Shown: positions 2,469 through 22,145 of the stretch, in pieces
Layout of the letters: each line of letters opens with the position of its first letter
How positions within the stretch are numbered: position 1 is the stretch's first letter
From: Leidyana gryllorum EB-2025a
Lineage: Eukaryota; Protista; Apicomplexa
Reading direction: 5' to 3'
Length of the DNA stretch: 22,221 bases
Assembly: GCA_048772705.1 (NCBI GenBank)
Contig: JBLWGC010000161.1
Location: 1-22,221 of the forward strand
Made by a program: the position numbers and the translations under genes
The notes under the pieces: model-generated
Database searches by the model: none
What the model saw: only the letters and a program-made list of their open reading frames with translations
What the model was told of the DNA's origin: nothing

Positions 2469-2602
2469 CGCTCTGAACACGCCGGCCTCCAACCCCAAAA
2501 GTCCTTCCATTTTGTTGTGCAGAGCCCGTCGCATATTGTTGATTCTCAACATAGTATGACCACTCTCGCGACTGTGCTCACCGGGTTGCACGACCGACAG
2601 GG

Positions 2603-2673
2603 GGCTATTTGGTCTAGTGGTATATTCTTCCTTCGGGTGGAAGAGGTTCTGGGTTCGATTCCCAGAACAGCCC
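2603..2673 (+). tRNA. trnP-CGG: tRNA-Pro(CGG), slightly degenerate
   Basis: CTTCC-TT-CGG-GT-GGAAG; 1-nt D-arm deletion and an acceptor mismatch. Confidence 0.7.
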
Positions 2674-2754
2674 CGTTGGTTGTCGGTTGACCCGACGCTT
2701 CACCTCATCTTAAGATGGTACGGCTCTCATCCGAAGCCTCAACTCGGGAACTTG

Positions 2755-2827
2755 TCCACTGTAGTCTAAGTGGCTAGGATATGCGGCTCTCACCCGCACG
2801 ATCCGGGTTCAAGTCCCGGCAGTGGAA
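2755..2827 (+). tRNA. trnE-CTC: tRNA-Glu(CTC)
   Basis: TCCACTG/CAGTGGA; TGCGG-CT-CTC-AC-CCGCA. Confidence 0.93.
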
Positions 2828-2903
2828 GTCCTCGGACTACTCGAGCAAAGTGCTCCAGTAATCTCCGTCAATAGTGACTGATTCGTGATCTTTGGCCTGC
2901 ATT

Positions 2904-2975
2904 GCCTTCTTAGCTTAGGGGCAGAGCATTCGCTTAGTAAGCGAAAGGTCGCCGGTTCGATTCCGGCAGAAGGCT
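2904..2975 (+). tRNA. trnT-AGT: tRNA-Thr(AGT)
   Basis: GCCTTCT/AGAAGGC; full cloverleaf. Confidence 0.93.
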
Positions 2976-3024
2976 TTAGTCACGACCCAATCAATTCTAT
3001 AGCTGTTTCCCTCCTGCGCACACT

Positions 3025-3096
3025 TAGCAGTGCGTCGTTTCGATCGACGGACCTTTGGGTTATGAGCCCAACACTCTTCCACTGAGCTACACTGCT
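3025..3096 (-). tRNA. trnM-CAT: Initiator tRNA-Met(CAT)
   Basis: A1-U72, TTGGG-CT-CAT-AA-CCCAA, T-loop GATCGAAA. Confidence 0.93.
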
Positions 3097-3231
3097 CGGT
3101 CTGCAACATGGAAGAGGGAGCCGAAATGCGATTCTTGAGATGTTAATTGCCTTGAGTGCGAAGTCTGCTAACGAGCTGGCTGCGTTGGTTCTAAAAACTG
3201 CTTATCTCATCGGGTCAACCGACAACCAAGA

Positions 3232-3303
3232 GGGCTGTTCTGGGAATCGAACCCAGGACTTCTTCCACCCGAAGGAAGAATCATACCACTAGACCAAACA
3301 GCC
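3232..3303 (-). tRNA. trnP-CGG: tRNA-Pro(CGG)
   Basis: Full cloverleaf, loop TT-CGG-GT. Confidence 0.92.
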
Positions 3304-3380
3304 GCCTAGCCGGTGGTTCAACCAGCTGGGCAAAGTCGAGAGACTCGTCTCACTACGTGAAGTATCACTCAATGCCATGA

Positions 3381-3453
3381 GGTAGGCTAACCCAGATGAT
3401 GAAACGGTGGCTTGCTATACGAAAGGTACTGGGATCGATTCCCAGCCCATCCG
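3381..3453 (+). pseudogene. Ala-derived degenerate element
   Basis: Keeps the Ala-type T-arm CTGGGATCGATTCCCAG; other arms decayed. Confidence 0.65.
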
Positions 3454-3529
3454 AGTTACATCGATGGAATGTTCGCCGGAGTAGTCTACTTGGCCTGTCA
3501 ACGCTGTCTGCCGAAACCACATCGCTACT

Positions 3530-3609
3530 TCCGGTGGGACGGAATCGAACCGCCGACTATCTGATGCCAGCACTACAGTCAGATGCTCTACCAACTGAGC
3601 TACCCCCGG
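3530..3609 (-). tRNA. trnY-GTA: tRNA-Tyr(GTA) with a 7-nt intron (3566-3572)
   Basis: C1-G72, A73; TCTGA-CT-GTA-G[TGCTGGC]A-TCAGA. Confidence 0.9.
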
Positions 3610-3620
3610 CCGTCCAACTG

Positions 3621-3709
3621 CTCCGGGGTTCGAAAGGCTCAACCCCAGATCCTCGCCCTGTCGCACTGCGGTCTGAGCACAGCCCCTTAGACAAAACGGC
3701 CATCTTGCG
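3621..3709 (-). pseudogene. Leu(CAG) 5' part fused to a non-Leu hairpin
   Basis: Leu body through the variable arm, then GAGGATCTGGGGTTGAGCCTTTCGAACCCCGG. Confidence 0.7.
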
Positions 3710-3802
3710 GGATGTTGTTGGCTCGCCGCTCCACGCGTTTTCTGTGCTTGGAATCTCATAATGGAAGAACTTTTGGGGTTGGAGGCCGGCGTGTTCAGAG
3801 CA

Positions 3803-3874
3803 TTTGAGATAGTGTAGTGGTTAGTATTTCCGCCTGTTACTCGGAAGACCCGGGTTCGATTCCCGGTCTCAGAG
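3803..3874 (+). pseudogene. tRNA-Asp body with GTT anticodon
   Basis: TCCGC-CT-GTT-AC-TCGGA; acceptor and anticodon-stem mismatches. Confidence 0.75.
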
Positions 3875-4063
3875 CAGTTCCAGCCCCTCACAACTGCTGC
3901 AACTCAGATTTTGTCTCAGCTGGTCCGGACTTCATCCGGGATTGTACGAGTGGCTCTACCACTTGAGATAGCCGCCCGCCCGCCAAACCTAGGTGAACTT
4001 TCCATCTGAGACCAACTCACAGTTCTCTGGCGCCTCATTTGTCAGTGCAACTGTTGTGTCTCG

Positions 4064-4137
4064 TCCACTGTAGTCTAAATGGCGAGGATATGCGGCTCTC
4101 ACCCGCACGATCCGGGTTTCAAGTCCCGGCAGCGGAA
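4064..4137 (+). tRNA. trnE-CTC: tRNA-Glu(CTC), degenerate (extra T in T-loop)
   Basis: Glu body with GGGTTTCAAG and an acceptor mismatch. Confidence 0.65.
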
Positions 4138-4197
4138 ATCCAGCTGAGTGTGCTTGCAGGCAACAGTTCCATTCTTACATCCAGGGATATAGATCCA

Positions 4198-4270
4198 CAC
4201 CGCCCGCGGGGCTCGAACCCGCGACTGCAAGATTAAAAGTCTTGCGCTCTACCGACTGAGCTAGGGCGGC
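4198..4270 (-). tRNA. trnK-TTT: tRNA-Lys(TTT)
   Basis: CAAGA-CT-TTT-AA-TCTTG; full cloverleaf. Confidence 0.93.
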
Positions 4271-4401
4271 AAGGAAGCTCTCAACTTAGTTACACCCTAT
4301 TTGCCGGTGGGTGGAGCAGTGGGAGTGTTGAGTGGTGGAACAATGTGCTTCAGTAACTTCCGTCAATAGGGACTCCTCACGCGTGATGTCCAGTTAACAT
4401 T

Positions 4402-4472
4402 GCCTTTTTAGCTTGGGGCAGAGCATTCGCTTAGTAAGTGAAAGGTCGCCGGTTCGATTCGGGCAGCAGGCT
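4402..4472 (+). pseudogene. tRNA-Thr(AGT), degenerate
   Basis: Several stem substitutions and A14 deletion. Confidence 0.7.
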
Positions 4473-4520
4473 TGGCTCACGAGCCAATCTATCCTGCAAC
4501 TGTTCCCTTCTGCGCACACT

Positions 4521-4592
4521 TAGCAGTGCGTCGTTTCGATCGACGGACCTTTGCGTTATGAGCCTAACACTCTTCCACTGAGCTACACTGCT
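4521..4592 (-). pseudogene. Initiator tRNA-Met with broken anticodon stem
   Basis: TTAGG/CGCAA in place of TTGGG/CCCAA. Confidence 0.75.
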
Positions 4593-5224: not shown

Positions 5225-5317
5225 ACCAATCTAAAGTGCATTGCAAATCCCCTCCAAACCTCTCAGATCCTTATCGAGACTGAGAGACCAGTCAGAATAG
5301 CTTAAGTGCGTGAGCAA

Positions 5318-5389
5318 AGCCTTCTGCCGGAATCGAACCGGCGACCTTTCGCTTACTAAGCGAATGCTCTGCCCCTAAGCTAAGAAGGC
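5318..5389 (-). tRNA. trnT-AGT: tRNA-Thr(AGT)
   Basis: Same body as 2904-2975. Confidence 0.93.
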
Positions 5390-5465
5390 AATATTAGCTG
5401 GAAATCACGCATCAGTCACTATTGACGGAGGTTACTGGAGCACTTTGCTCGAATGGTCCAATGAC

Positions 5466-5538
5466 TTGCACTGCCGGGACTTGAACCCGGATCGTGCGGG
5501 TGAAAGCCGCATATCCTAGCCACTTAGACTACAGTGGA
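5466..5538 (-). tRNA. trnE-TTC: tRNA-Glu(TTC)
   Basis: Loop CT-TTC-AC; one acceptor mismatch at 2:71. Confidence 0.82.
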
Positions 5539-5655
5539 CAACTCCCTCAGCTGCAGCTTTAGCCGAGAGCCGTACCCTCTTGACAAGACGTGGTTGCAGA
5601 ATCCTGCGGTAGAAAAAGGAGGATCTCTATACTAACCTCTGAACCATTGTAGCTG

Positions 5656-5728
5656 GGTCTTGTAGCTCAGTCGGCAGAGCGTGTGGCTGTTCACCACAAA
5701 GTCGCAGGTTCGAAACCTGCCAGGACCG
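5656..5728 (+). tRNA. trnN-GTT: tRNA-Asn(GTT), A37>C
   Basis: TGTGG-CT-GTT-CA-CCACA; otherwise as 6351-6423. Confidence 0.8.
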
Positions 5729-5772
5729 GTTTCAGAGGCACACTAGACACTGACTGCGCTGCTCTCCCAATG

Positions 5773-5832
5773 GCACTTGTGGTCTGCGACCCTTCAAAGA
5801 TGTAAGGTTGGGTTTGGCTCCCGCCACGTACA
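5773..5832 (+). pseudogene. tRNA-Gly(TCC)-derived relic
   Basis: GCACTTGTGGTCT..GCGACCCTTC shared with 13946-14016; D-arm deleted. Confidence 0.55.
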
Positions 5833-5846
5833 GCCGTAGCGTACTT

Positions 5847-5919
5847 TGGACGACCTGGGCATCGATCCCAGTACCTCTCGCATGCTAAGCGAGCGCTCTA
5901 CCATTTGAGCTGGTCGCCC
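5847..5919 (-). tRNA. trnA-AGC: tRNA-Ala(AGC)
   Basis: G3-U70; CTCGC-TT-AGC-AT-GCGAG; U8>C. Confidence 0.85.
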
Positions 5920-6002
5920 ATTGAGCAAAGCGGAGTACATCCAGTTCTTTTTTACATGGTATGACCAGTCTCTCCACTTTGCACAAACGAAGCCACGCAG
6001 GA

Positions 6003-6075
6003 AACGGCTGGAGGGACCCGAATCCTCAACCTTCGCCTTGGGAGGGCAACGCGCTATGCATTGCGGCACAACCGC
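6003..6075 (-). pseudogene. tRNA-Arg(CCT) body with CCC anticodon
   Basis: Paralog of 14397-14469; D-loop and T-arm substitutions. Confidence 0.72.
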
Positions 6076-6156
6076 ATTCGCAACCCATCCACCGAGCTGC
6101 CCCAAGGTGTCTCCTCTTACACCCAACTAGTATCGAGATGACCGAAGCTTGTCTAT

Positions 6157-6229
6157 GGTGCGGTGGCCTAATGGATAGGGCATCGGTCTTCGGAACCGGG
6201 AGTTGTGGGTTCGAGTCCCATCCGCATCA
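6157..6229 (+). tRNA. trnR-TCG: tRNA-Arg(TCG)
   Basis: TCGGT-CT-TCG-GA-ACCGG; GGTTCGAGTCC. Confidence 0.92.
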
Positions 6230-6350
6230 TAGCCTCTCACGCGAAAGACGTTCCGCAAGCTTGCTAGCTGTATGGGGAGCCACTGCCGCGCATGTCGAGT
6301 TGGAGTGCTCGTGATATGATTTTCCTTCCCTTGGAGAGTGCCTCTGAAAC

Positions 6351-6423
6351 CGGTCCTGGCAGGTTTCGAACCTGCGACTTTGTGGTTAACAGCCACACGC
6401 TCTGCCGACTGAGCTACAAGACC
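6351..6423 (-). tRNA. trnN-GTT: tRNA-Asn(GTT)
   Basis: Full cloverleaf, TGTGG-CT-GTT-AA-CCACA. Confidence 0.93.
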
Positions 6424-6541
6424 CAGCTACAATGTTTCAGAGGTTAGTATAGAGATCCTCCCTTATTCTACCGCAGGATTCTGGAATCACGTCTTGTCAA
6501 GAGGGTACGGCTCTCGGCTAAAGCTGCAGCTGAGGGAGTTG

Positions 6542-6614
6542 TCCACTCTTGTCTAAGTGGCTAGGATATGCGGCTCTAACCCGCACGATCCGGGTTCAAG
6601 TCCCGGCAGTGGAA
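6542..6614 (+). tRNA. tRNA-Glu body with CTA (amber) anticodon; possibly a pseudogene
   Basis: TGCGG-CT-CTA-AC-CCGCA (anticodon 6576-6578); G7>C and A9>T relative to 2755-2827. Confidence 0.65.
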
Positions 6615-6674
6615 ATCCAGCTGAGTGTGCTTGTAGGCAACGGTTCCATTCCTACTCCCAGAGACATTGATTTG

Positions 6675-6747
6675 CACCGCCCGCGGGGCTCGAACCCGCG
6701 ACTGCAAGATTAAAAGTCTTGCGCTCTACCGACTGAGCTAGGGCGGC
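6675..6747 (-). tRNA. trnK-TTT: tRNA-Lys(TTT)
   Basis: Same body as 4198-4270. Confidence 0.93.
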
Positions 6748-6875
6748 AAGGAAGCTCTAAACTTAGTTACACCCTATTTGCCGTTGGGTGGAGAAGTGGA
6801 AGGATTGACTGGTGGAACAATGTGCTCCAGTAACTTGCGTCAATAGTGACTGATGCGTGATTACCAGCTGATATT

Positions 6876-6947
6876 GCCTTCTTAGCTTAGGGGCACAGCA
6901 TTCGCTTAGTAAGCGAAAGGTCGCCGGTTCGATTCCGGCACAAGGCT
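6876..6947 (+). tRNA. trnT-AGT: tRNA-Thr(AGT), two G>C substitutions
   Basis: D-stem and acceptor mismatches. Confidence 0.7.
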
Positions 6948-6996
6948 TTGCTCACGAGAAAATCTATTCTATAACTGTTTCCCTTCTGCGCACACT

Positions 6997-7068
6997 TAGC
7001 AGTGCGTCGTTTCGATCGACGGACCTTTGGGTTATGAGCCCAACACTCTTCCACTGAGCTACAATGCT
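6997..7068 (-). tRNA. trnM-CAT: Initiator tRNA-Met(CAT), one acceptor mismatch
   Basis: As 3025-3096 with G5>T. Confidence 0.82.
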
Positions 7069-7209
7069 CAGTCTGCAACATGGAAGAGGTAGCCGACATG
7101 CGATTCTTGAGATGCTAGTTACCCTGACTGCCCTACCCAAGTGGGCTAACGAGGTGGTTGTGTTGTTTCTGAGGGCAACTTGTCCCGTCGGGTCAACCGA
7201 CGACCAAGA

Positions 7210-7280
7210 GGGCTGTTCTGGGAATCGAACCAGGACTACTTCCACCCTGAGGAAGGATCATACCACTAGACCAAACAGCC
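7210..7280 (-). pseudogene. tRNA-Pro(AGG), degenerate
   Basis: U33>C and a 1-nt T-stem deletion. Confidence 0.72.
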
Positions 7281-7310
7281 GACTGGTCGGTGGTTCAACC
7301 CGCTGGGTAC

Positions 7311-7414
7311 AGTCGAGAGACTCGTATCACTATGTGAAGTATCACTCAATGCCATGAGGTAGTCGAGAGACTCGTATCACTATGTGAAGTACCACTCAAT
7401 GCCATGAGGTAGTC
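7311..7414 (+). repeat. 50-bp tandem duplication
   Basis: AGTCGAGAGACTCGTATCACTATGTGAAGTA(T/C)CACTCAATGCCATGAGGT twice, one mismatch. Confidence 0.95.
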
Positions 7415-7419
7415 ATAGA

Positions 7420-7492
7420 GGGAGGCTAGCCCAGATGATGAAACGGTGGCTTAGTATACAAAAGGTTCTGGGATCGATTCCCAGCCCATCCG
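7420..7492 (+). pseudogene. Ala-derived degenerate element
   Basis: Paralog of 3381-3453. Confidence 0.65.
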
Positions 7493-7586
7493 AACTACAT
7501 AGATGGAACCCTCGCGGGACTAGTCTAGTTGGCCTATCAACGCTGTCCATCAGGTTGAGTAGTAGTTTGCCGATGACCGCTCTACT

Positions 7587-7666
7587 TCCGGTGGGACGGA
7601 ATCGAACCGCCGACTATCTGATGCCAGCACTACAGTCAGATGCTCTACCAACTGAGCTACCCCCGG
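7587..7666 (-). tRNA. trnY-GTA: tRNA-Tyr(GTA) with a 7-nt intron
   Basis: Same sequence as 3530-3609. Confidence 0.9.
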
Positions 7667-7677
7667 CCGTCCAACTG

Positions 7678-7765
7678 CTCCGGGGTTCGAAAGGCTCAAC
7701 CCCAGATCCTCGCCCTTTGGACTGCGGCCTTAACACAGCGCCTTAGACCACTCGGCCATCTTGCC
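7678..7765 (-). pseudogene. Leu(AAG) 5' part fused to a non-Leu hairpin
   Basis: 5' part matches 8735-8814; 3' part matches the 3621-3655 hairpin. Confidence 0.75.
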
Positions 7766-7846
7766 GGAGTGCTCTTGGCTCGCCGCTTTACACGTTTTCT
7801 GATCGTGAGTCAAAATAGAAAGACTTCTGGGATTGGAGGCCGGCGT

Positions 7847-7897
7847 GTATTTCCGCCTGTCACGCGGAAGACCAGGGTTCGTTTCCCGGTCTCGGGG
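7847..7897 (+). pseudogene. 5'-truncated tRNA-Asp(GTC)
   Basis: GTATTTCCGCCTGTCACGCGGAAGACC..GGTCTCGG joined directly to the upstream flank. Confidence 0.75.
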
Positions 7898-7933
7898 CAC
7901 AGATGATTTCGCTTAGGATTGTTTCCTTTGATT

Positions 7934-7993
7934 CTCGAGATAGTATTTTCGCCTGTCACGCGGAATACCCGGGTTCGATTCCCGGTGTCGGAG
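7934..7993 (+). pseudogene. tRNA-Asp(GTC) lacking the D-arm
   Basis: 12-nt deletion between TAGTAT repeats. Confidence 0.8.
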
Positions 7994-8045
7994 ATAGATC
8001 GTCTTCCGCTCTAGATTTCGTGATGCTCACCTGAACGATGCGTGT

Positions 8046-8115
8046 TACAGCCACCGAGGATGGAACTCGGGACCTTCTGCGTGTTAAACAGACGTCGTGA
8101 CCACTAGATGGCTGC
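8046..8115 (-). pseudogene. tRNA-Val(AAC), 3-nt deletion
   Basis: GCAGCCATCTAG lacks GGT; T-loop TTCCATC. Confidence 0.78.
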
Positions 8116-8255
8116 ACGGAGCTTCCGGACTGCGAAAGGGGCGTGTCTCTGGAACCACGTATCCGATGAGCCTGGTTTTTATGTATCGGCCTAAGTTGGA
8201 CGGCCTGGACTAGTTTTAAGACCCTTCGGTTTGTATTCAGGAATGGAGATGTTAC

Positions 8256-8326
8256 GCATCTGTGGTTTAGTGGTAGACTGTGTCGTTGCCACCGAGACGA
8301 CCCAAGTTCGATTCCCGGCAGACGCA
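8256..8326 (+). pseudogene. tRNA-Gly(GCC), degenerate
   Basis: Several stem mismatches relative to 1644-1714. Confidence 0.7.
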
Positions 8327-8909: not shown

Positions 8910-8981
8910 ACTGAGATAGTATGGTGGTTAGTATTTCCGCCTGTCACGCGGAAGACCCGGGTTCGATTCCCAGAAGAGCCC
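8910..8981 (+). pseudogene. Chimeric tRNA-Asp(GTC)/tRNA-Pro
   Basis: Asp up to GGGTTCGATTCCC, then the Pro 3' end AGAAGAGCCC and the Pro downstream flank. Confidence 0.85.
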
Positions 8982-9669: not shown

Positions 9670-9741
9670 GGCTGTTTGGTCTAGTGGTATGATCCTTCCT
9701 TAGGGTGGAAGGAGTCCTGGGTTCGATTCCCAGAACAGCCC
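9670..9741 (+). tRNA. trnP-AGG: tRNA-Pro(AGG)
   Basis: CTTCC-TT-AGG-GT-GGAAG; full cloverleaf. Confidence 0.93.
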
Positions 9742-10112: not shown

Positions 10113-10246
10113 AATCTTCATGTGAGGCTGGTATGTCGGCGTGACCAAGTGAGTGGATCTCTGATACAAATTCGGACTTAGTAACCAATTCCATTTGTAT
10201 TGATCGTGGAATCTTGGGCCTTCCTCGGGGATGGGGCGAGCTTCTT

Positions 10247-10319
10247 GCCGCCCCAACTCCGTCAGTAGAGCGCAAGACTTTTGAAGGGAGAACCGCGGGT
10301 TCGGGCGGCGCGAGCAGTC
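10247..10319 (+). pseudogene. Lys-derived element upstream of Ser
   Basis: Paralog of 1373-1445. Confidence 0.6.
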
Positions 10320-10380
10320 CTAGTAAAGCTCGCTGAACCGTATGTGAATCCGCTGGCCGCAAATAGCCAAGTTCGACAGC

Positions 10381-10461
10381 GGCAACTTGCCCAAGTGGTT
10401 AAGGGGGTAGACTAGAAATCTACTGGGCCTGGCCCGCGCTGTTCAAATCGAGCAGTTGTCG
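10381..10461 (+). tRNA. trnS-AGA: tRNA-Ser(AGA), T-stem damaged
   Basis: GTAGA-CT-AGA-AA-TCTAC; 1-nt deletion in the T-stem. Confidence 0.65.
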
Positions 10462-10581
10462 TGTGCTGCGATCATCGGAGTAGGCGGCTGGGCTCAAACA
10501 CCAGCAGTACATGCTAGAGATTGCAGTGGCGACGCAGAGGCATCAAGTAAGTGCATAGGTGCCATCTGTCGTCGCAGAAGT

Positions 10582-10655
10582 GGTCGCGTAGCTCAGTCGG
10601 TCAGAGCGTGAGCCTAATAAGCTCAAGGTCCCCGGTTCGAGCCCGGGCGTGACCA
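10582..10655 (+). tRNA. trnI-AAT: tRNA-Ile(AAT)
   Basis: GGTCGCG/CGTGACC; TGAGC-CT-AAT-AA-GCTCA. Confidence 0.92.
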
Positions 10656-10755
10656 AGTGAGTGGATCTCTGATAAATAGTTGCCCTGAACCCGAGGAAGC
10701 TCCAAAATCCTGCGACCAATACGAAAGGAACTAGTTACTAAGTCCGAGCTTCCTT

Positions 10756-10828
10756 GCCGCGCCACCTCCGGCAATAGACCCCTAAACTTTCAATGGAGAG
10801 ACCGCGGCTTCGGGCAGCGCCAGCAGTC
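10756..10828 (+). pseudogene. Lys-derived element upstream of Ser
   Basis: More decayed paralog of 13353-13425. Confidence 0.55.
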
Positions 10829-10890
10829 CGAGTCAAGCTTGCTGAACCGTATGTGAAGCCACTGTCTGCGGCATGCCGAGTTCGACCGTT

Positions 10891-10972
10891 GGCAACTTGC
10901 CCGAGTGGTTAAGGGGGTAGACTAGAAATCTACTGGGCCTGGCCCGCGCTGGTTCAAATCCAGCAGTTGTCG
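10891..10972 (+). tRNA. trnS-AGA: tRNA-Ser(AGA)
   Basis: Full cloverleaf, long variable arm, G73. Confidence 0.93.
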
Positions 10973-11054
10973 TGCGATCTGATTGGAGGGGCAGACAACA
11001 ACTCACTCCTGAAACCCCAGAATGGTGCCTCAATCAACCATCCGCCATCTTCTC

Positions 11055-11125
11055 TGCATCTGCCGGGAATCGAACCTGGGTCGTCTCGGTGGCAACGACA
11101 CAGTCTACCACTAAACCACGGATGC
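11055..11125 (-). pseudogene. tRNA-Gly(GCC), degenerate
   Basis: Inverted paralog of 8256-8326. Confidence 0.7.
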
Positions 11126-12015: not shown

Positions 12016-12087
12016 GGCTGTTTGGTCTAGTGGTATAATCCTTCCTTAGGGTGGAGAGAGTCCTGAGTTCGATTCCCAGAACAGCCC
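12016..12087 (+). tRNA. trnP-AGG: tRNA-Pro(AGG), degenerate
   Basis: Anticodon-stem and T-stem substitutions. Confidence 0.62.
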
Positions 12088-12499: not shown

Positions 12500-12572
12500 G
12501 CCGCCCTAGCTCAGTCCGTGGAGCGCAAGACTGTTAATCTTGCAGTCGCGGGTTCGAGCCCCGCGGGCGGTG
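12500..12572 (+). pseudogene. tRNA-Lys body with GTT anticodon
   Basis: CAAGA-CT-GTT-AA-TCTTG; G18>C, A21>G. Confidence 0.72.
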
Positions 12573-12632
12573 CAAATCAATGTCTCTGGGAGTAAGAATG
12601 GAACCGGTGCCTACAACCAAACTCTGGTGGAT

Positions 12633-12705: not shown

Positions 12706-12882
12706 CGAGTGGTTGAGTGGTTGAGTTGGGCTTCGGCCGAGAGCCGTACCGTCTTGGAAAACATGGTATGTCGGCGTGATCAAGTGAGTGGATCTCTGAT
12801 ACAGATTCGGACGTAGTAACCAATTCCATTTGTATTGATCGTGGAATCTTGGGCCTTCCTCGGGTACGGGGCGAGCTTCCTT

Positions 12883-12955
12883 GCCGCCCCAACTCCGTCA
12901 GTAGAGCGCAAGACTTTTGAAGGGAGATCCGCGGGTTCGGGCGGCGCGAGGAGTC
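12883..12955 (+). pseudogene. Lys-derived element upstream of Ser
   Basis: Paralog of 10247-10319. Confidence 0.6.
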
Positions 12956-13016
12956 CTAGTAAAGCTCGCTCAACCGTATGTGAAGCCACTGGCCGCAAAA
13001 TGCCAAGTTCAACAGC

Positions 13017-13098
13017 GGCAACTTGCCCGAGTGGTTAAGGGGGTAGACTAGAAATCTACTGGGCCTGGCCCGCGCTGGTTCAAATCCAGCAGTTGTCG
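13017..13098 (+). tRNA. trnS-AGA: tRNA-Ser(AGA)
   Basis: Same body as 10891-10972. Confidence 0.93.
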
Positions 13099-13219
13099 TG
13101 TGCTGCGATCATCGGAGTAGGCGGCTGGGCTCAAAACACCAGCAATACATGCTAGAGATTGCAGTGGCGACGCAGAGGCATCAAGTAAGTGAATAGGTGC
13201 CATCTGTCGTCGCAGAAGT

Positions 13220-13293
13220 GGTCGCGTGGCTCAGTCGGTTAGAGCGTGAGCCTAATAAGCTCAAGGTCCCCGGTTTGAGGCCGGGCGTGACCA
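13220..13293 (+). pseudogene. tRNA-Ile(AAT), T-arm mutated
   Basis: GGTTTGAGGCC in place of GGTTCGAGCCC. Confidence 0.68.
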
Positions 13294-13352
13294 AGTGAGT
13301 GGATCTTTGATAAAGAGTTGCCAATACGAAAGAAACTTTTTCAAGCTTCCTT

Positions 13353-13425
13353 GCCGCGCCAGCTCCGTCGGTAGAGCGCAAGACTTTCAATGGAGAGACC
13401 GCGGGTTCGGACAGCGCGAGCGGTC
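13353..13425 (+). pseudogene. Lys-derived element upstream of Ser
   Basis: GCCGCGCCAGCTCCGTCGGTAGAGCGCAAGACTTTCAA..GCGGGTTCG. Confidence 0.65.
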
Positions 13426-13486
13426 CGAGTCAAGCTGCTGAACCGTATGTGAAGCCACTGCCTGCGGCATGCCGAGTTCTACCGTT

Positions 13487-13568
13487 GGCAACTTGCCCGA
13501 GTGGTTAAGGGGGTAGACTCGAAATCTACTGGGCCTGGCCCGCGCTGGTTCAAATCCAGCAGTTGTCG
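13487..13568 (+). tRNA. trnS-CGA: tRNA-Ser(CGA)
   Basis: Ser body, loop CT-CGA-AA. Confidence 0.92.
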
Positions 13569-13632
13569 TGCGATGTGATCGGAGGGTCGAACACCAACTC
13601 ACGCGCAAAACTCAACCTTGTGCTATCTCCTC

Positions 13633-13704
13633 TGCATCTGCCCGGAATCGAACCCGGGTCTTCCGCGTGACAGGCGGAGACACTAACCACTATACTGACT
13701 CGGA
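13633..13704 (-). pseudogene. Chimeric tRNA-Asp(GTC)/tRNA-Gly
   Basis: Asp up to GGGTTCGATTCC, then the Gly 3' end GGCAGATGCA and the Gly downstream flank. Confidence 0.85.
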
Positions 13705-14296: not shown

Positions 14297-14396
14297 ATGG
14301 ATAGGCTTCGGTTATCTGGATACTGGTTGGGTGAAAGAGGAGACACCTCGGGGCAGCCCGCTTTCGTCCAACTCAAAAGTCGGATGCGTCCCGAAT

Positions 14397-14469
14397 GCGG
14401 TTGTGGCGCAATGGATAGCGCGTTGCCCTCCTAAGGCAAAGGTTGAGGGTTCGAGTCCCTCTAGCCGTT
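14397..14469 (+). tRNA. trnR-CCT: tRNA-Arg(CCT)
   Basis: TTGCC-CT-CCT-AA-GGCAA; GAGGGTTCGAGTCCCTC. Confidence 0.9.
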
Positions 14470-14585
14470 TCCTGCGTGCCTTCGTTTGTGCAAAGTGGAG
14501 CACAAACAGGTGAAAGTGATCGATGCAGTTGGGAGATTGGTCATTCCATGTAAAAAAGAAATGGATGTACTGGGGTTTGCTAAAT

Positions 14586-14659
14586 GGGCGTCTAGCTCAA
14601 ATGGAGGCTCGCTACGCTTAGCGTGCGAGAGATACTGGGATCGATGCCCAGGTCGTCCA
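14586..14659 (+). pseudogene. tRNA-Ala(AGC), degenerate
   Basis: D-arm and anticodon stem disrupted. Confidence 0.72.
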
Positions 14660-14766
14660 AAGTACGTACGGCTGCACGTGCCGGGATCTCACCATCTTTG
14701 AAGGGTCGCAGACCACAATTGCCATTGCGAGAGCAGCGCAGTCAGTGTCTAGCGTGCCTCTGAAAG

Positions 14767-14839
14767 CGCTCCTGGCAGGTTCCGAGCCTGCGACTTTGCC
14801 GTTAACAGCCACACCCTCTGCCGCCTGAGCTACAAGACC
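14767..14839 (-). pseudogene. tRNA-Asn(GTT), degenerate
   Basis: Anticodon stem and T-loop mutated. Confidence 0.72.
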
Positions 14840-14934
14840 CCTTACAATGTTTCAGAGGTTAGTAGAGAGACCCTCCTCTTCCTACAACAGTTCGCACGGG
14901 GTGCCCGAGGGAAGGTGTAATCAGTTACAGTCGC

Positions 14935-15015
14935 GGCAAGGTGGCCGAGCGGTTAAGGCGGCGGCCTGCTGAGCCGTTGGGTTTTACCCGCATGAATTCG
15001 AATCTCCCCTTGTCG
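14935..15015 (+). pseudogene. tRNA-Ser(GCT), T-stem degenerate
   Basis: GGCAAGG/CCTTGTC; GCGGC-CT-GCT-GA-GCCGT; long variable arm. Confidence 0.7.
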
Positions 15016-15185
15016 GTAGCATTCGCGGAGAGCGCAATTGCTTCAATGATTGAAGTGAGCTTTCTGTCCGACTCAAATCCAACGCTCTACGCTGGGCGCT
15101 ATATACAGGAGCCAATTAAATTTTCCAGACGTCAGTAGAGAGACCCGTGTTGCGTGTGTCCAGTTGAGGAAGCGCTAGTCCGGAT

Positions 15186-15213
15186 AATTCTACCGACTCA
15201 ATTCTACCGACTC
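15186..15213 (+). repeat. 14-bp tandem duplication
   Basis: AATTCTACCGACTC twice. Confidence 0.9.
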
Positions 15214-15232
15214 TTCTGGGATGGGCTGAATC

Positions 15233-15304
15233 CGTTGCGTGGTGTAGTGGTTAGCACTGGAGACTCTGAATCTCCCGACCTGGGTTCGATTCCCGGCGCG
15301 ACCT
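15233..15304 (+). tRNA. trnQ-CTG: tRNA-Gln(CTG), G1>C
   Basis: GGAGA-CT-CTG-AA-TCTCC; GGTTCGATTCC. Confidence 0.85.
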
Positions 15305-15366
15305 TGGAACTGGTCCTCACTACTTCGTGAAACTTCGCTATCCTTTGGGCTGCGGGGACCATCCGT

Positions 15367-15439
15367 GCAGCCATGGTCTAGCGGTTACGACGTCTGCTTC
15401 ACACGCAGAAGGTCCCGAGTTCGATCCTCGGTGGCTGTA
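15367..15439 (+). tRNA. trnV-CAC: tRNA-Val(CAC)
   Basis: TCTGC-TT-CAC-AC-GCAGA. Confidence 0.92.
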
Positions 15440-15474
15440 GCTTGCAACTTTCAGCGGCAACCAAAGGAGACAAT

Positions 15475-15546
15475 CTCCGAAACCGGGCATCGAACCCGGA
15501 TCTTCCGCGTGACAAGCAGAAGTCCTGACCACTACTTTATCTCGGA
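15475..15546 (-). pseudogene. tRNA-Asp(GTC), degenerate
   Basis: Multiple stem substitutions. Confidence 0.7.
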
Positions 15547-15640
15547 CGCTCGTCAACGCGCCGGACTTCAACCGCGAAAGTCTTCCTTCTCGAAACTTCA
15601 CGGACAGAAAACGTGTAAAGTGGCGAGCCAAGAACACTGC

Positions 15641-15720
15641 GGCAAGATGGCCGAGTGGTCTAGGGCGCTGTGTTAAAGCCGCAGTCCGAAAGGCCGTTGG
15701 TTCGAATCCCCCGCTTGTCA
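15641..15720 (+). pseudogene. tRNA-Leu body, loop reads AAA
   Basis: CTGTG-TT-AAA-GC-CGCAG; T-stem mismatches. Confidence 0.7.
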
Positions 15721-15789
15721 ACCGTTGTATTGTATTGGCACTCGGTCCCCTCACTTCACTGATAGACAGTCGTTCGAGCTACATACGGC

Positions 15790-15860
15790 TGGACCTGCCG
15801 GGACTCGAACCCGGGTTACGACCTTGGAAGGGTCGCATCTTACCCTTAGACCACAAGTGC
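15790..15860 (-). tRNA. trnG-TCC: tRNA-Gly(TCC)
   Basis: Paralog of 13946-14016; one acceptor mismatch. Confidence 0.82.
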
Positions 15861-16083
15861 AATTGCGAAAGATCTGCAGCACCCCGAGAGACTCGGGCAA
15901 ATTTCTGCCTCCAGCTGTCTGCAACTCACTCAGAAACGGACTATTCGGGGATCGATCGAGCAATTCCACAGACGAAGGAGACTTATACCACTAGCACTTC
16001 AACTCGACATGCCGGGGCAGCGGCTCCTATACGACTAGCAAGCCTGCCTGGGTCGAAACGGAACGGATTCCGAGTGAGAGGCT

Positions 16084-16142
16084 GTGGTGCGGATGGGACT
16101 CGACCCCACAACTCCCGGTTCCGAAGACCGATGCCCTATCAT
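16084..16142 (-). pseudogene. 5'-deleted tRNA-Arg(TCG)
   Basis: About 17 nt at the 5' end missing relative to 14224-14296. Confidence 0.8.
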
Positions 16143-16305
16143 GGATAAGCTTCGGTCATCTCGATACTGGTTGGGTGAAAGGAGTATTTGATCTCAAAAC
16201 CTCCCCCAAACCGTTGTTAAAAAGTGCAGCGAGTAAGACATGTCGCTGGCAACCTCGGGGCGGCACGGACGCGGCGCATTCTGATACTCGATGTGACGAC
16301 CTCTT

Positions 16306-16377
16306 TGCCTCGCCGGCGGATCGAACACGGAACTTCCAAGTCTTGTCTAGCGCTCTCTAACTGAGCTTCCTACGCGC
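16306..16377 (-). pseudogene. Decayed tRNA-Phe-like relic
   Basis: AGCTCAGTTAGAGAGCGCTAGAC..GTGTTCGATCC..GGCA; anticodon lost. Confidence 0.45.
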
Positions 16378-16651
16378 GAGAAAGTCATGGAGCGCGGTGA
16401 AGATGAGTGACCCACCGCATGTGCGAGCCAGTCTTGCCAAACCGTATGTGAAGCCGCTGGCCGCAAAATGCCGAGCTCGACAGATGGCAACTGGCCCGAG
16501 TGCTCAAGGTCTGAGTATGCACGCGGTCGGCCTCAATGTGGCGCCTTACTTTGCCAGCCTGTAGCCCTGCACACCCCATAGCATTTAGTGGTTCTTGACA
16601 TGTTATGACCAGTCTCCCGACTCTACCAGCAATTTGCACCACCGATCAGTC

Positions 16652-16723
16652 GGCTGTTTGGTCTAGTGGTATGATCCTTCCTTAGGGTGGAAGGAGTCCT
16701 GGGTTCGATTCCCAGAACAGCCC
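16652..16723 (+). tRNA. trnP-AGG: tRNA-Pro(AGG)
   Basis: Same body as 9670-9741. Confidence 0.93.
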
Positions 16724-16910
16724 TCTTGGTCGTCGGTTACCCGACGGGACAAGTTGCCCTCAGAACCAACACAGCCACCTCGTTAGCCCACCTCGGTAGG
16801 GCAGTCACGGCAACTAACATCTAGAGAATCGCATTTCGGCTAAGTCGACGACCTTGGAAAGGGGTTCCAAGAGCACGAGTGCCGTCTAGAGAGTACGGTG
16901 CCGAATAACA

Positions 16911-16983
16911 CGGTCCTGGCAGGTTTCGAACCTGCGACTTTGTGGTTAACAGCCACACGCTCTGCCGACTGAGCTACAAGACC
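16911..16983 (-). tRNA. trnN-GTT: tRNA-Asn(GTT)
   Basis: Same body as 6351-6423. Confidence 0.93.
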
Positions 16984-17746: not shown

Positions 17747-17818
17747 GGGCTGTTCTGGGAATCGAACCCAGGACTTCTTCCACCCAAAGGAAGAATCATA
17801 CCACTAGACCAAACAGCC
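17747..17818 (-). tRNA. trnP-TGG: tRNA-Pro(TGG)
   Basis: CTTCC-TT-TGG-GT-GGAAG. Confidence 0.92.
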
Positions 17819-18537: not shown

Positions 18538-18609
18538 GGGCTGTTCTGGGAATCGAACCCAGGACTCCTTCCACGCTAAGGAAGGATCATACCACTAGAC
18601 CAAACAGTC
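18538..18609 (-). tRNA. tRNA-Pro body with AGC anticodon; possibly a pseudogene
   Basis: CTTCC-TT-AGC-GT-GGAAG; G2>A, otherwise the Pro-AGG body. Confidence 0.65.
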
Positions 18610-19820: not shown

Positions 19821-19871
19821 CAGACTCATTGCCTTGTGGTCCAACATCTCCGATCATTCCAAACCATCTTC

Positions 19872-20111: not shown

Positions 20112-20256
20112 GGAGGCACGCCTCAAACCGCCCGTGGCAAATTAGCAGAGACGCTGACAAGCTTGGTCGGCACGAGGCCGGGGCATTCTGACACTTGATG
20201 TAACAACCCCCTGAGATAGAATCGAATGTGACTTACGCGGTGGAACGGCGGTGATC

Positions 20257-20330
20257 GCTCCCCTAGCTCAGCTGGTTAGAGCATCGGCCTTATGTGCCGA
20301 AGGTCGAGGGTTCGATCCCCCCGGGGAGCA
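20257..20330 (+). tRNA. trnI-TAT: tRNA-Ile(TAT), intronless
   Basis: GCTCCCC/GGGGAGC; TCGGC-CT-TAT-GT-GCCGA. Confidence 0.87.
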
Positions 20331-20471
20331 AATCAACCCAATGACAGCCGAACGCGACCGCCGAGTACTCCAGCATTTGACACCTATGAGTGCCCTAGCC
20401 GGGCAGGCCGACCAGGAGGCTGTTTGGTCTGAAGGTATGATTTTTCCTCGCTTAAAAGAACATTGCAACTG

Positions 20472-20544
20472 GGTCTTGTAGCTCAGTCGGCAAAGCGTGT
20501 AGCTGTTCACCACAAAGTCGCAGTTTCGAAGGCTAGCAGTACGG
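20472..20544 (+). pseudogene. tRNA-Asn pseudogene
   Basis: Paralog of 8454-8526. Confidence 0.68.
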
Positions 20545-20619
20545 GAGCTGCGATATGCCACTCCCTCTTAGAGGTGCAACTCTGTATTTAACTACCAGCA
20601 GGTGCCGCCCTACTGAGTT

Positions 20620-20692
20620 TGGACGACCTGGGTATCGATCCCAGTACCTCTCGCATGCAAAGCGAGCGCTCTACCATCTGAGCTAGCCGCCC
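20620..20692 (-). tRNA. trnA-TGC: tRNA-Ala(TGC)
   Basis: Same body as 8602-8674. Confidence 0.92.
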
Positions 20693-20799
20693 ATCCGCTC
20701 TACATGAAGAACCTTCTGCATCCAGTGGCTGACCGAGTGCCCATACGTCACGGCGGGCAGTGCTGGGATCCAGTCGCAGGTTGTCCTGACTACAACGGC

Positions 20800-20879
20800 T
20801 GACAAGAGTGCGATTCGAACCCACGCCCTTTCGGACTGCGGCCTGAACACAGCGTTTAAGACCACTACGCCACCTTTCC
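20800..20879 (-). pseudogene. tRNA-Leu(CAG), degenerate
   Basis: Loop TT-CAG-GC; acceptor, D- and T-stem mismatches. Confidence 0.7.
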
Positions 20880-20974
20880 GGAATGTTGATGGCTCGCCCT
20901 TCCACGCGCTTCCTGTACTTGGAATCTCAAAATGGAAGGTCTTCCGGGGTTGGAGGCCGGGGTATTCACGAGTG

Positions 20975-21046
20975 TCCGAGATAGTATAGTGGTTAGTATT
21001 TCCGCCTGTCACGCGGAAGACCCGGGTTCGATTCCCGGTCTCGGAG
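20975..21046 (+). tRNA. trnD-GTC: tRNA-Asp(GTC)
   Basis: Same body as 9096-9167. Confidence 0.94.
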
Positions 21047-21101
21047 CACAGTTGGTTCCGCTTAAAATTGTCTCCTTGGGTTGCCGCTGAAAGTTGCGAG
21101 C

Positions 21102-21174
21102 TACAGCCACCGAGGATCGAACTCGGGACCTTCTGCGTGTTAAGCAGACGTCGTGACCACTAGACCATGGCTGC
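21102..21174 (-). tRNA. trnV-AAC: tRNA-Val(AAC)
   Basis: TCTGC-TT-AAC-AC-GCAGA. Confidence 0.92.
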
Positions 21175-21237
21175 ACGGAAGGTCCCGCAGATCAAGAGGA
21201 GTGGTGAGGTTTCACAAAGCAGTGAGAATTAGTTGTG

Positions 21238-21309
21238 AGGTCGCGCCGGGAATCGAACCCAGATCGGGAGATTCAGAGTCCCCAGTGCTAACCACTACAC
21301 CACGCAACC
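21238..21309 (-). tRNA. trnQ-CTG: tRNA-Gln(CTG)
   Basis: GGTTGCG/CGCGACC; loop CT-CTG-AA. Confidence 0.92.
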
Positions 21310-21585
21310 CATTCACTCCTTCACAAAAAGAGTTGGTAGAGCCTCCGGACTAGCCATCAACCGGACACATGCAACACGCGCATCTCTACTAACCTCTGAG
21401 ATATTGGAACTGGCTCTTGTACTTTAGTCGGCAGAACGTGTGGTTGTAAAATACAAACTCGGAGATCCGGTCTCTGAGGCAACCTTCACACATACTGCGG
21501 TGCCCAAGTCTATCCAAGGGCTACAGGCACCATTAAAGCTCTCAACTCTGTAGTCAAATAGCGCCAGTTGCAGCACTACAAAGTT

Positions 21586-21658
21586 TGGACGACCTGGACA
21601 TTGATTCCAGTACCTCCCGCACGCTAAGCGAGCGCTTCACCATTTGAGCTAGTCCCCC
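21586..21658 (-). pseudogene. tRNA-Ala(AGC), degenerate
   Basis: Ala body with several substitutions. Confidence 0.65.
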
Positions 21659-21747
21659 GCTGTGCAGACCCCGTCGCATTTTGTTGATTCTCAACATAGT
21701 ATGACCACTCTCGCGACTGTGCTCACCGGGTTGCACGACCGACAGGC

Positions 21748-21819
21748 GGCTGTTTGGTCTAGTGGTATGATCCTTCCTTAGGGTGGAAGGAGTCCTGGGT
21801 TCAATTCCCAGAACAGCCC
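21748..21819 (+). tRNA. trnP-AGG: tRNA-Pro(AGG)
   Basis: Full cloverleaf, T-loop TTCAATT. Confidence 0.92.
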
Positions 21820-21952
21820 TCTTGGTTGTCGGTTGACCCGATGGGATAAGCAGTTTTAGAAGTAACACAGCCACCTCGTTGCCACTTCGGCACTCAAGGC
21901 AATTAACATCTCAAGAATCGCATTCCGGCTCCTTCTTCCATGTTGCAGACTA

Positions 21953-22024
21953 AGCAGTGTAGCTCAGTGGAAGGGTGTTGGGCTCATAACCCAAAGGTCC
22001 GTCGATGGAAACGACGCACTGCTA
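21953..22024 (+). tRNA. trnM-CAT: Initiator tRNA-Met(CAT), C56>G
   Basis: A1-U72; T-loop GATGGAAA. Confidence 0.7.
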
Positions 22025-22073
22025 AGTGTGCGCAGGAGGGAAACAGCTATAGGATTGATTGGGTCGTGACCAA

Positions 22074-22145
22074 AGCCTTCTGCCGGAATCGAACCGGCGA
22101 CCTTTCGCTTACTAAGCGAATGCTCTACCCCTAAGCTAAGAAGGC
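22074..22145 (-). tRNA. trnT-AGT: tRNA-Thr(AGT)
   Basis: Full cloverleaf. Confidence 0.92.

Follow-up and report, generated by a model that had tools for sequence, protein, structure and literature searches.

Heterogeneous tRNA gene clusters ('islands') have been described in zebrafish, stickleback and Nematostella (Bermudez-Santana et al. 2010, PMC2888827; review PMC13578239); they turn over rapidly, and a tie to chromosomal instability has been proposed (PMC2888827; PMC13578239). In Entamoeba, arrayed tRNA genes make up > 10% of the genome; the arrays repeat 25 defined units regularly in tandem, and short tandem repeats separate the genes (PMC2652664). The array described here resembles the animal islands in comprising thousands of tRNA genes and pseudogenes, densely packed, of many isotypes and in both orientations. 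It differs from them in its host, an alveolate close to apicomplexans, in that most of its genes have no oligo-T terminator, and in that the domain to which it belongs may amount to about one fifth of the assembly, judging from a rough first-look count of 11,591 tRNA candidates in 15.5 Mb. With Entamoeba it shares a protist host and the arrangement of tRNA genes in arrays (PMC2652664), but it is aperiodic, runs in both orientations and consists of diverged blocks with many truncated tRNAs.

The window, which is the whole contig of 22,221 nt, carries approximately 126 tRNA-like units on both strands along its entire length (Table 1). The array had been placed at 2520-22145; it is indeed there, but these limits are too narrow since it fills positions 1-22221. 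ARAGORN found 86 intact-looking tRNAs in the 22.2 kb (≥ 5 genes within 5 kb being enough for a cluster), the gap from one ARAGORN tRNA to the next having a median of 133 nt, and Rfam RF00005 found 85. BLAST with representatives of the 25 body families present in the window gave 126 tRNA-like elements, of which 85 are full and 41 partial. Together with its sister loci (208 kb) the window holds 817 tRNAs, and orientation is mixed across the dataset (360 plus, 386 minus). The genes are of nuclear eukaryote type: A34 anticodons are present (AGT, AGG, AGA, AGC, AAC, AAT, AAG and ACG), the initiator-type Met tRNA has A1:U72 and an AUCGAAA T-loop, and tRNA-Tyr has a 7-nt intron. Oligo-T terminators are rare: of 743 tRNAs, 12.5% have a T4 ≤ 40 nt downstream (8.7% for an A4 control) and 3.8% have one ≤ 15 nt downstream. 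A mechanical list of open reading frames in the window includes ten of 120-179 aa. The contig is probably a piece of a tRNA-derived repeat domain, multi-megabase in size, in an alveolate nuclear genome; the HSP70 of this alveolate has its closest affinity to gregarines.

Table 1. Features of the window referred to in the text; single tRNA copies are named by their start position.
Feature	Position	Strand	Observation
Whole contig (G000:C161)	1..22221	.	Dense eukaryote-type tRNA gene/pseudogene array
Pro-CGG	2603..2674	+	In common with Pro 21748: 87 nt upstream, 21 nt downstream
Thr-AGT	2904..2975	+	One of seven copies: 809-, 2904+, 4402+, 5318-, 6876+, 12326-, 22074-
Initiator Met	3025..3096	-	Never a switch point: 30 spanning, 0 one-sided copies
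Multi-tRNA block Glu-Lys-Thr-iMet-Pro-Tyr	6498..7787	.	Inverted copy at 12756-11559, 83%
Gly-GCC	8256..8326	+	Node seamless on both sides
Chimeric tRNA	8913..8981	+	Asp positions 4-62 joined to Pro 3' end and Pro D2 downstream flank
Pro-AGG	9670..9741	+	Clearest seamless node; upstream type U1, downstream type D2
Ser-Ile-Ser block	10129..11085	.	Direct repeat with 12764-13663, 87-90%
Pro-AGG	12016..12087	+	Homologous to 16652: 85 nt upstream, 119 nt downstream
Chimeric tRNA	13633..13704	-	Asp positions 1-64 joined to Gly-GCC 3' end and its downstream flank
	14337..16978	+	Recurs as whole separate 2637-bp contig C154, 98.5% identical
Pro-TGG	17747..17818	-	Unique upstream flank U2; downstream D2 (391 nt in common with 9670)
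Pro body, anticodon AGC (read as Ala)	18538..18609	-	U1 upstream, third downstream type

Most of the window consists of recurring material. Self-chains that contain spacer number 148 (72 direct and 76 inverted) and cover 92% of it as diverged blocks of 70-96% identity, which confirms that a limited set of flanks is used in both orientations. Median chain length is 216 bp and identity runs from 76 to 91% (10th-90th percentile), the largest shuffled block in the window being about 3 kb; paralog identity overall spans 70% to 99.8%. The absence of long-range periodicity, also noted previously, holds for the window: no offset bin contains more than 6.3% of direct aligned bases, and TRF reports only four small rows, representing three loci (28-104 nt), in 22 kb, with no array-scale repeat and no other short tandem repeats between the tRNA genes. 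An Entamoeba-type tandem array was rejected on these two results. Block ends are found both in spacers and in tRNAs. Both ends of the multi-tRNA block at 6498 lie mid-spacer, while the Ser-Ile-Ser block at 10129 has its left end in a spacer; its right end lies within Gly 11055 in one copy, and in the second copy within a truncated element.

The preliminary description made tRNA genes the recombination nodes of this mosaic, with continuing ectopic recombination or inversion between almost identical tRNAs of 72 bp as the main engine and the tRNAs as privileged nodes in a graph walk. The enrichment of breakpoints in tRNAs that this implies, whose absence had been named beforehand as grounds for refuting it, did not appear overall. 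Junctions were sampled from the window and 186 kb of sister arrays, out of a domain of perhaps 3 Mb; the tRNA zone was defined as an intact tRNA ± 6 nt, and circular shifts served as the null in the window. Homology ends occurred at 3.42 per exposed kb in tRNA zones and 3.01 in spacers (ratio 1.14, bootstrap CI 1.0-1.38), and 96 of the 315 end sites in the window fell in tRNA zones against 105.7 ± 8.0 expected (P = 0.90). The ratio was similar in all identity classes, with a modest rise in the youngest pairs (≥ 95% identity; 1.36, CI 1.1-1.73), which favours the tRNA-node model, and in pairs of ≥ 98% identity about 6 of 14 internal ends were at tRNA edges. Also in its favour, the outer edge of the tRNA, the only position enriched in the window permutation, held 60 sites against 15.9 ± 4.2 expected (approximately 4-fold, P < 0.001).

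A junction was called seamless when it lay ≤ 6 nt from the outer edge of an intact tRNA common to otherwise unrelated flanks. Joint classification of 39,897 pairwise ends, which are not independent because a much-copied junction counts many times, placed 55% as spacer/spacer, 20% as seamless within the same family and 13% inside or truncating a tRNA. For chains of ≥ 92% identity, beyond whose ends the sequence is unrelated (local scores equal to the null), the proportions were 62% spacer, 27% seamless and 8% truncated; the spacers hold tRNA fossils that ARAGORN misses, and some spacer junctions may be old tRNA junctions. Synteny thus does switch at tRNA genes, as had been described, but at a minority of junctions. 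Minimal counts of distinct events also speak against the tRNA-node model, with 61 at tRNAs and about 156 in spacers (0.71 and 1.55 per kb), although this estimate is crude and the spacer count is inflated by degraded neighbours. Since spacers hold junctions about as often per base, tRNAs are probably one exchange site among many, and not privileged nodes or hot spots.

The Pro copies illustrate both kinds of junction. The U1 flank of Pro 9670 is common, over 80-400 nt, to 3232, 7210, 12016, 16652, 21748 and the Pro body at 18538, and over 63 nt to 2603. Its D2 flank is found again only at Pro 17747, and homology stops 0 nt past the tRNA; in the sample, 32 copies have the left flank and tRNA only and three are spanning. 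Pro 17747 loses its homology to every other Pro copy at 0-3 nt from the tRNA edges, with no spanning copy in the sample, and at 18538 the switch occurs 5 nt past the 3' end. The examples given earlier for Pro fared unevenly, one being correct, one displaced by 21 nt, one miscounted and one wrong. Between 2603 and 21748 homology crosses the tRNA and a further 21 nt, and the proposed switch at the tRNA lies in spacer. The CCGGCTAGGC upstream flank was said to be paired with three downstream flanks (3232, 9670 and 12016); it does switch, but between two types, as 3232 and 12016 (371 nt homologous upstream) share 332 nt downstream and only 9670 differs, exactly at the tRNA 3' end. The supposedly different upstream flanks of 12016 and 16652 are homologous over 85 nt at 84%.

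Thr and Gly give further examples. All seven Thr-AGT copies have in common approximately 61 nt upstream, the tRNA and 1-9 nt downstream, and their neighbours occur in all four possible combinations, Lys or Glu lying upstream and iMet or His downstream, as the tRNA-node model would predict. However, the exchanging block is approximately 140 nt long, of which the tRNA is half, and since the common block of Thr and Pro starts 53-87 nt upstream, the node comprises more than the tRNA. Gly 8256 has 299 nt upstream and 1 nt downstream in common with 11055, and 0 nt upstream and 64 nt downstream in common with 20039; no copy spanning it was found in the 186-kb sample. Flank comparison agrees with the earlier statement that Thr, Glu, Asp, Ser and Pro swap neighbours. 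The initiator Met behaves otherwise: besides the copy in Table 1, those at 6997, 12229 and 21953 have 28-30 spanning copies and no one-sided copy, and that at 4521 has two spanning and none one-sided.

Graphs of upstream against downstream flanks contain cycles for Thr (5), Gly-GCC (4), Pro (1) and Val (1), and those of Thr and Gly are in keeping with the tRNA-node model. The graphs of the other 21 of 25 families have none and are trees, far from the full upstream-by-downstream matrix of free exchange, which suggests few historical events, later amplified, and not free ongoing reassortment. Nor are the tRNA copies the roughly 72-bp identical sequences that had been supposed, since copies of one family have a median identity of 94.4%, with complete identity in only 6.6% of pairs. 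On contig C206, an inverted duplication of 99.5% identity has both ends at tRNA edges (Ala and Val), which again points to tRNA-bounded exchange. Ectopic exchange between tRNA copies is therefore upheld in part, by the seamless ends, the Thr combinations, C206 and the chimeras described below, but without a per-base excess, and it is unlikely that such exchange is the main engine.

Two tRNAs in the window are fusions of different families (Table 1). The crossover lies inside the common GGGTTCGATTCCC (B-box/T-arm) in the chimera at 8913 and in the common CCCGGGTTCGATTCC in that at 13633. A GGTTCGA-type motif is the join point in both and in two more elsewhere, as might be expected of programmed or site-specific recombination targeting a tRNA motif such as the B-box. 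That explanation is the most improbable of those considered: unique chimeras number only 4-5 among 1077 elements, most junctions are in spacers, and the motif is the longest stretch common to different tRNAs, as expected for use of microhomology.

Some features of the assembly could be taken to mean that a true regular higher-order repeat has been scrambled by wrong assembler paths through identical tRNAs. Two small contigs, C154 and C46, repeat parts of larger ones at 98.5-99.7% identity and stop within tRNAs (C154 5 nt inside the tRNA at 16911-16983), which suggests that the assembly graph tangles at repeats. Among sequencing runs, a single low-share match was obtained, made up of short Logan contigs in pieces of 115-317 nt, and no RNA run contained the stretch. 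The junctions in the window are nevertheless not assembler errors, because 78 of its 86 flank-tRNA-flank triples are present again, in diverged form (75-100% identity), on other contigs, their joins having been inherited through evolution. The tRNAs are, moreover, short (72 nt) and diverged, most junctions are in spacers, where wrong tRNA paths would not act, and there is no hidden period. An artefact of this kind is highly improbable as the source of the mosaic.

Spread of a mobile or retroposed tRNA-derived element, SINE-like or inserting next to tRNAs, in place of rearrangement at the DNA level, would fit the abundance of tRNA-derived units and their lack of oligo-T terminators of their own. 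It is very unlikely, as the common blocks include long flanks along with several different tRNAs, whose order is fixed and whose orientation is mixed, TRF shows no poly-A or simple-repeat tails, and block ends are uniformly spread.

The explanation that we consider likely is long-term turnover of blocks, with junctions roughly in proportion to sequence length. Given the range of paralog identity, the domain would have formed and been rearranged over a long period, as short blocks (median approximately 200 bp, up to about 3 kb in the window) were repeatedly duplicated, inverted and deleted, leaving more than half of the junctions in spacers, about a quarter seamless at a tRNA outer edge and about a tenth cutting a tRNA. 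The seamless junctions would require homology-guided exchange, either within the tRNA alone or within the tRNA together with a short common leader; candidate mechanisms are unequal crossover, gene conversion and replication template switching. Two different tRNAs would occasionally fuse in their common B-box sequence, and most junctions at tRNA edges are presumably old events that were copied later. What the analysis points to is ordinary repeat-domain turnover with a sizeable homology-guided tRNA component, and not a tRNA-driven recombination system.

Genomes of the apicomplexan lineage usually have few tRNA genes. An alveolate with in the order of ten thousand terminator-less tRNA-like loci therefore merits a specialist look, whatever is made of the claim about recombination. 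A tRNA 'satellite' of about a fifth of such a genome, with genes mostly lacking Pol III terminators, might be a structural or a polycistronic tRNA-producing domain in which duplication, anticodon shifts on common bodies and B-box fusions generate new tRNA species; we put this forward tentatively and regard it as rather doubtful. Large mixed clusters in a few animals and regular arrays in Entamoeba are already known, but their evolution has rarely been measured at the level of junctions, and the present array permits such measurement junction by junction.

Among known processes, non-allelic homologous recombination at dispersed repeats produces inversions, deletions and duplications by exchange between short repeats; both the seamless junctions at tRNA edges and the inverted duplication bounded by tRNAs agree with it. 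According to work cited in PMC2888827, tRNA genes in yeast are replication-fork barriers or fragile sites; as junctions show no per-base excess at tRNAs, a fragile-site effect is not needed to account for the pattern here. In Arabidopsis, tRNA clusters (Tyr-Ser-Ser, Pro and Cys) vary among accessions through unequal crossover (PMC10701932, PMC13578239), and a 457-bp tandem unit on contig C129 resembles these locally amplified units. Each Arabidopsis cluster is regular and comprises one or a few isotypes, whereas the present array is scrambled and contains nearly all.

The mosaic arrangement of the tRNA array is real and not an artefact. Comparison of the window with itself gave 148 spacer-containing homology chains (alignment blocks between two copies), 72 direct and 76 inverted, at 70 to 96% identity, which cover 92% of the window. 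No hidden higher-order period was found in the window, where the best offset accounts for at most 6.3% of direct aligned bases and TRF reported just four tiny repeats. This bears out the preliminary description, in which a limited set of flanks recurs in both orientations without periodic order; the swapping of neighbours by Thr, Glu, Asp, Ser and Pro tRNAs is also real. In a sister array locus (L007, G000:C129, 7762-9050) a 457-bp Pro-Thr unit forms a local tandem repeat (98.8%), so periodic stretches exist elsewhere in the domain.

The joins in the window were inherited rather than made by the assembler. Each window tRNA, together with 70 nt on either side, served as a query against both window and sister loci. 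From the recurrence of 78 of the 86 flank-tRNA-flank triples, spanned whole at other places with 75 to 100% identity, it follows that the joins predate assembly. Some caution is called for by two small contigs, C154 (L001; 98.5% identical to window 14337-16978) and C46 (L013; a 99.7% match to the beginning of C43, L014). Both terminate inside tRNAs, which suggests local graph tangles; they are possibly haplotigs or assembly-graph leftovers. The sole matching read run contained 5% of sampled words, as Logan contigs of 115 to 317 nt, too short for long-range order. One 212-nt Logan contig links sequence resembling 13516-13582 to the tRNA at 9670 and is most simply explained as another paralogous locus.

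Comparative analysis reveals about as many junctions in tRNAs as their length would predict. The window and 20 further loci (186 kb), taken from other contigs of the array, were aligned all against all after removal of three near-duplicate loci (20,856 chains, median length 216 bp); each chain was followed outward, and its ends were assigned to intact tRNA (± 6 nt) or to spacer. Homology ended 3.42 times per exposed kb in tRNAs and 3.01 times in spacer, a ratio of 1.14 (bootstrap CI 1.0 to 1.38). Across three broad identity classes the ratio ranged from 1.05 to 1.21, and chains of ≥ 95% identity gave 1.36 (CI 1.1 to 1.73). Of 315 unique end sites in the window, 96 fell in tRNA zones, against 105.7 ± 8.0 expected under circular shifts (P = 0.90). 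An event-level estimate, with 40-nt flank ends clustered into 145 types, placed a minimum of 61 junction-forming events at tRNAs, compared with about 156 within spacers (0.71 versus 1.55 per kb, the spacer figure being inflated by degraded neighbouring tRNAs). The proposal that tRNA genes are the recombination nodes, with breakpoints enriched inside them, is therefore not upheld. Flank types summed over families (58 upstream, 70 downstream) did not clearly favour either the 5' or the 3' tRNA edge. A port-based continuity test on 40-nt flank ends (0.59 across tRNAs, 0.40 across spacers, hazard ratio 0.75) was kept in a supporting role only, and alignment-based walks were used, because degraded neighbouring tRNAs inflate spacer breaks.

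The earlier impression of tRNA nodes reflects a pile-up of junctions at the tRNA outer edge, where the window has 60 end sites against 15.9 ± 4.2 expected from circular shifts. When the two copies were classified together at 39,897 ends, 55% of the ends lay in spacer in both copies. A further 20% were seamless, lying at the outer edge of a same-family intact tRNA in both copies; 13% paired the interior of an intact tRNA with a truncated remnant, and 8% paired an outer edge with an unrecognised element. Among chains of ≥ 92% identity, 62% of ends were in spacer, 27% were seamless and 8% truncated a tRNA; in these chains the 60 nt past each end score no better than the null, which shows the ends to be real.

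Exchange guided by tRNA sequence is a real component, accounting for about a quarter of junctions. Random non-homologous breaks could not leave two copies with one flank and the tRNA in common and an unrelated flank on the other side, which argues for guidance by the tRNA; such seamless junctions may have arisen by tRNA-guided crossover, conversion or template switching. Two elements in the window are true chimeras, joined within B-box sequence that both partners have in common (see the table). A strict chimera scan returned four matches (three unique) and one more was found by hand, giving four to five unique chimeras among 1077 elements; B-box fusion is thus real but minor.

Coordinates of tRNA variants and recent rearrangements in the window and sister loci
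Feature	Location	Strand	Details
Asp/Pro chimera	window 8913-8981		joined within shared B-box sequence, then Pro's own downstream flank
Asp/Gly chimera	window 13633-13704	minus	joined within shared B-box sequence, then Gly's own downstream flank
tRNA-Tyr with 7-nt intron	window 3530-3609, 7587-7666		ARAGORN i(39,7)
Anticodon-shifted copies on conserved bodies (examples)	window 1008-1081, 12500-12573, 6542-6614, 15641-15720, 1875-1956, 18538-18609, 3803-3875		
Inverted duplication, 2.79 kb, 99.5%	L016 (G000:C206) 808-3598 and 5390-8179		arms end exactly at Val/Ala tRNA edges; 1.79-kb centre
Indel, 2.4 kb	L006 (C212) 1432-4064 versus L009 (C61) 5288-5538		250-bp direct repeats flanking; arrays otherwise 99% identical

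The Pro examples of the preliminary description hold only in part. Every Pro copy in the window except that at 17747 has the same upstream flank for at least 53 to 87 nt, and three downstream flank types follow. The first (D1) lies behind the copies at 3232, 7210, 12016, 16652 and 21748 and also provides the first 21 to 23 nt downstream of 2603; D2 follows 9670 and 17747, and D3 follows 18538. The switch at 9670 is exactly at the tRNA 3' end, as had been claimed. Between the copies at 2603 and 21748 the switch is 21 nt downstream of the tRNA. One Pro upstream flank said to lead to three downstream flanks in fact leads to two, and the copies at 12016 and 16652, described as having different upstream flanks, are homologous over 85 nt upstream, so that this example fails.

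Thr copies have about 61 nt upstream, the tRNA and 1 to 9 nt downstream in common. Their neighbours are Lys or Glu upstream and iMet or His downstream, and all four combinations are present; the block that exchanges spans about 140 nt, half of it tRNA. Gly 8256 is seamless at both sides. The block upstream of Thr (about 61 nt) and Pro (53 to 87 nt) is retained in almost every copy regardless of the sequence beyond it, and may be an ancestral leader or regulatory element.

Several results limit the tRNA-node model. The tRNA copies had been taken to be identical; median identity of same-family pairs is 94.4%, and only 6.6% of pairs are identical. In 21 of 25 families, upstream and downstream flank types are linked in a tree-shaped graph, indicating that each new flank combination arose about once and was later amplified. 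Cycles occur only in Thr (five), Gly-GCC (four), Pro (one) and Val (one). In the window, iMet, Tyr, Arg-ACG, Arg-CCT and Gly-TCC bodies have no or almost no partners matching on one side only; as both flanks are common to all their copies, any exchange there would be invisible.

Turnover has been long-lasting and extends to recent times, since paralogs span an unbroken range of identity between about 70% and 99.8%. Every kind of junction is represented among events at ≥ 98% identity. These include the inverted duplication and the 2.4-kb indel (see the table), the latter having one edge in spacer and one at a Val edge and looking like an unequal crossover, as well as the 457-bp tandem unit, two tRNA-truncating ends and several mid-spacer ends. 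Where flanks are 76% identical, tRNA bodies are 92.7% identical; their roughly three-fold slower divergence indicates selection or conversion. Despite this conservation, a third of all elements are truncated.

The window is one complete contig (G000:C161) of an assembly of 237 contigs (15.5 Mb). ARAGORN predicted 86 tRNA genes in it, and an Rfam search gave 85 matches to the tRNA model and none to any other. BLAST searches with a single representative per body family (25 families) found 126 tRNA-like elements, typically spaced 50 to 150 nt apart; 85 are full-length and the other 41 are truncated or degenerate. With remnants included, 38.5% of the window is tRNA-like. Sister loci are equally dense (817 tRNAs of 33 body families in 208 kb, window included). 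A rough first-look count gave 11,591 tRNA candidates across the assembly, and about 30 contigs carry copies of one 801-nt module. Other DNA interrupts the arrays: L011 (G000:C72, 20001-30000) has just eight tRNAs in its 10 kb, and its tRNA-free sequence includes an internal repeat of 600 bp (98.7%).

The window tRNAs are of nuclear eukaryote type, with A34 anticodons and an initiator-type Met. The 7-nt Tyr intron was seen in 19 copies across loci. Isoacceptor sets such as Thr AGT/TGT/CGT, Pro AGG/CGG/TGG, Val AAC/CAC/TAC and Ala AGC/CGC/TGC each belong to a single body family, and shifted anticodons occur on Lys (TTC/GTT), Glu (CTA, amber-reading), Leu (AAA/CCA), Pro (AGC) and Asp (GTT) bodies. 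Pol III oligo-T terminators are missing from most array tRNAs: among 743 tRNAs (window and L002-L020), 12.5% had T4 within 40 nt downstream, versus 8.7% with A4 as a control, and 3.8% had T4 within 15 nt.

One HSP70, encoded without introns on a large contig, shows 77% identity to gregarine HSP70s and 75 to 76% to those of Eimeria, Chromera and Vitrella, placing the host as an alveolate near apicomplexans. The assembly has about 40 HSP70-family matches, many of them tandem-clustered and intronless (G000:C104 at about 1.25-1.27 Mb, C2 at about 0.20-0.21 Mb and C230 at about 1.58-1.59 Mb). A pattern search of the whole assembly for the telomere repeat (TTTAGGG)3, allowing one mismatch, gave no match.

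Arrays of tRNA genes make up > 10% of the Entamoeba genome, in the form of regular tandem units that include short tandem repeats (PMC2652664); in contrast, the window has neither. Zebrafish, stickleback and Nematostella have dense mixed clusters of thousands of tRNA genes and pseudogenes in both orientations with rapid turnover, and it has been proposed that tRNA clusters are linked to chromosomal instability (PMC2888827; PMC13578239). A literature search found no published account of such arrays in gregarines or other alveolates, which does not prove their absence. The window belongs with heterogeneous clusters of this kind, from which it departs most notably in its lineage and in having hardly any oligo-T terminators.
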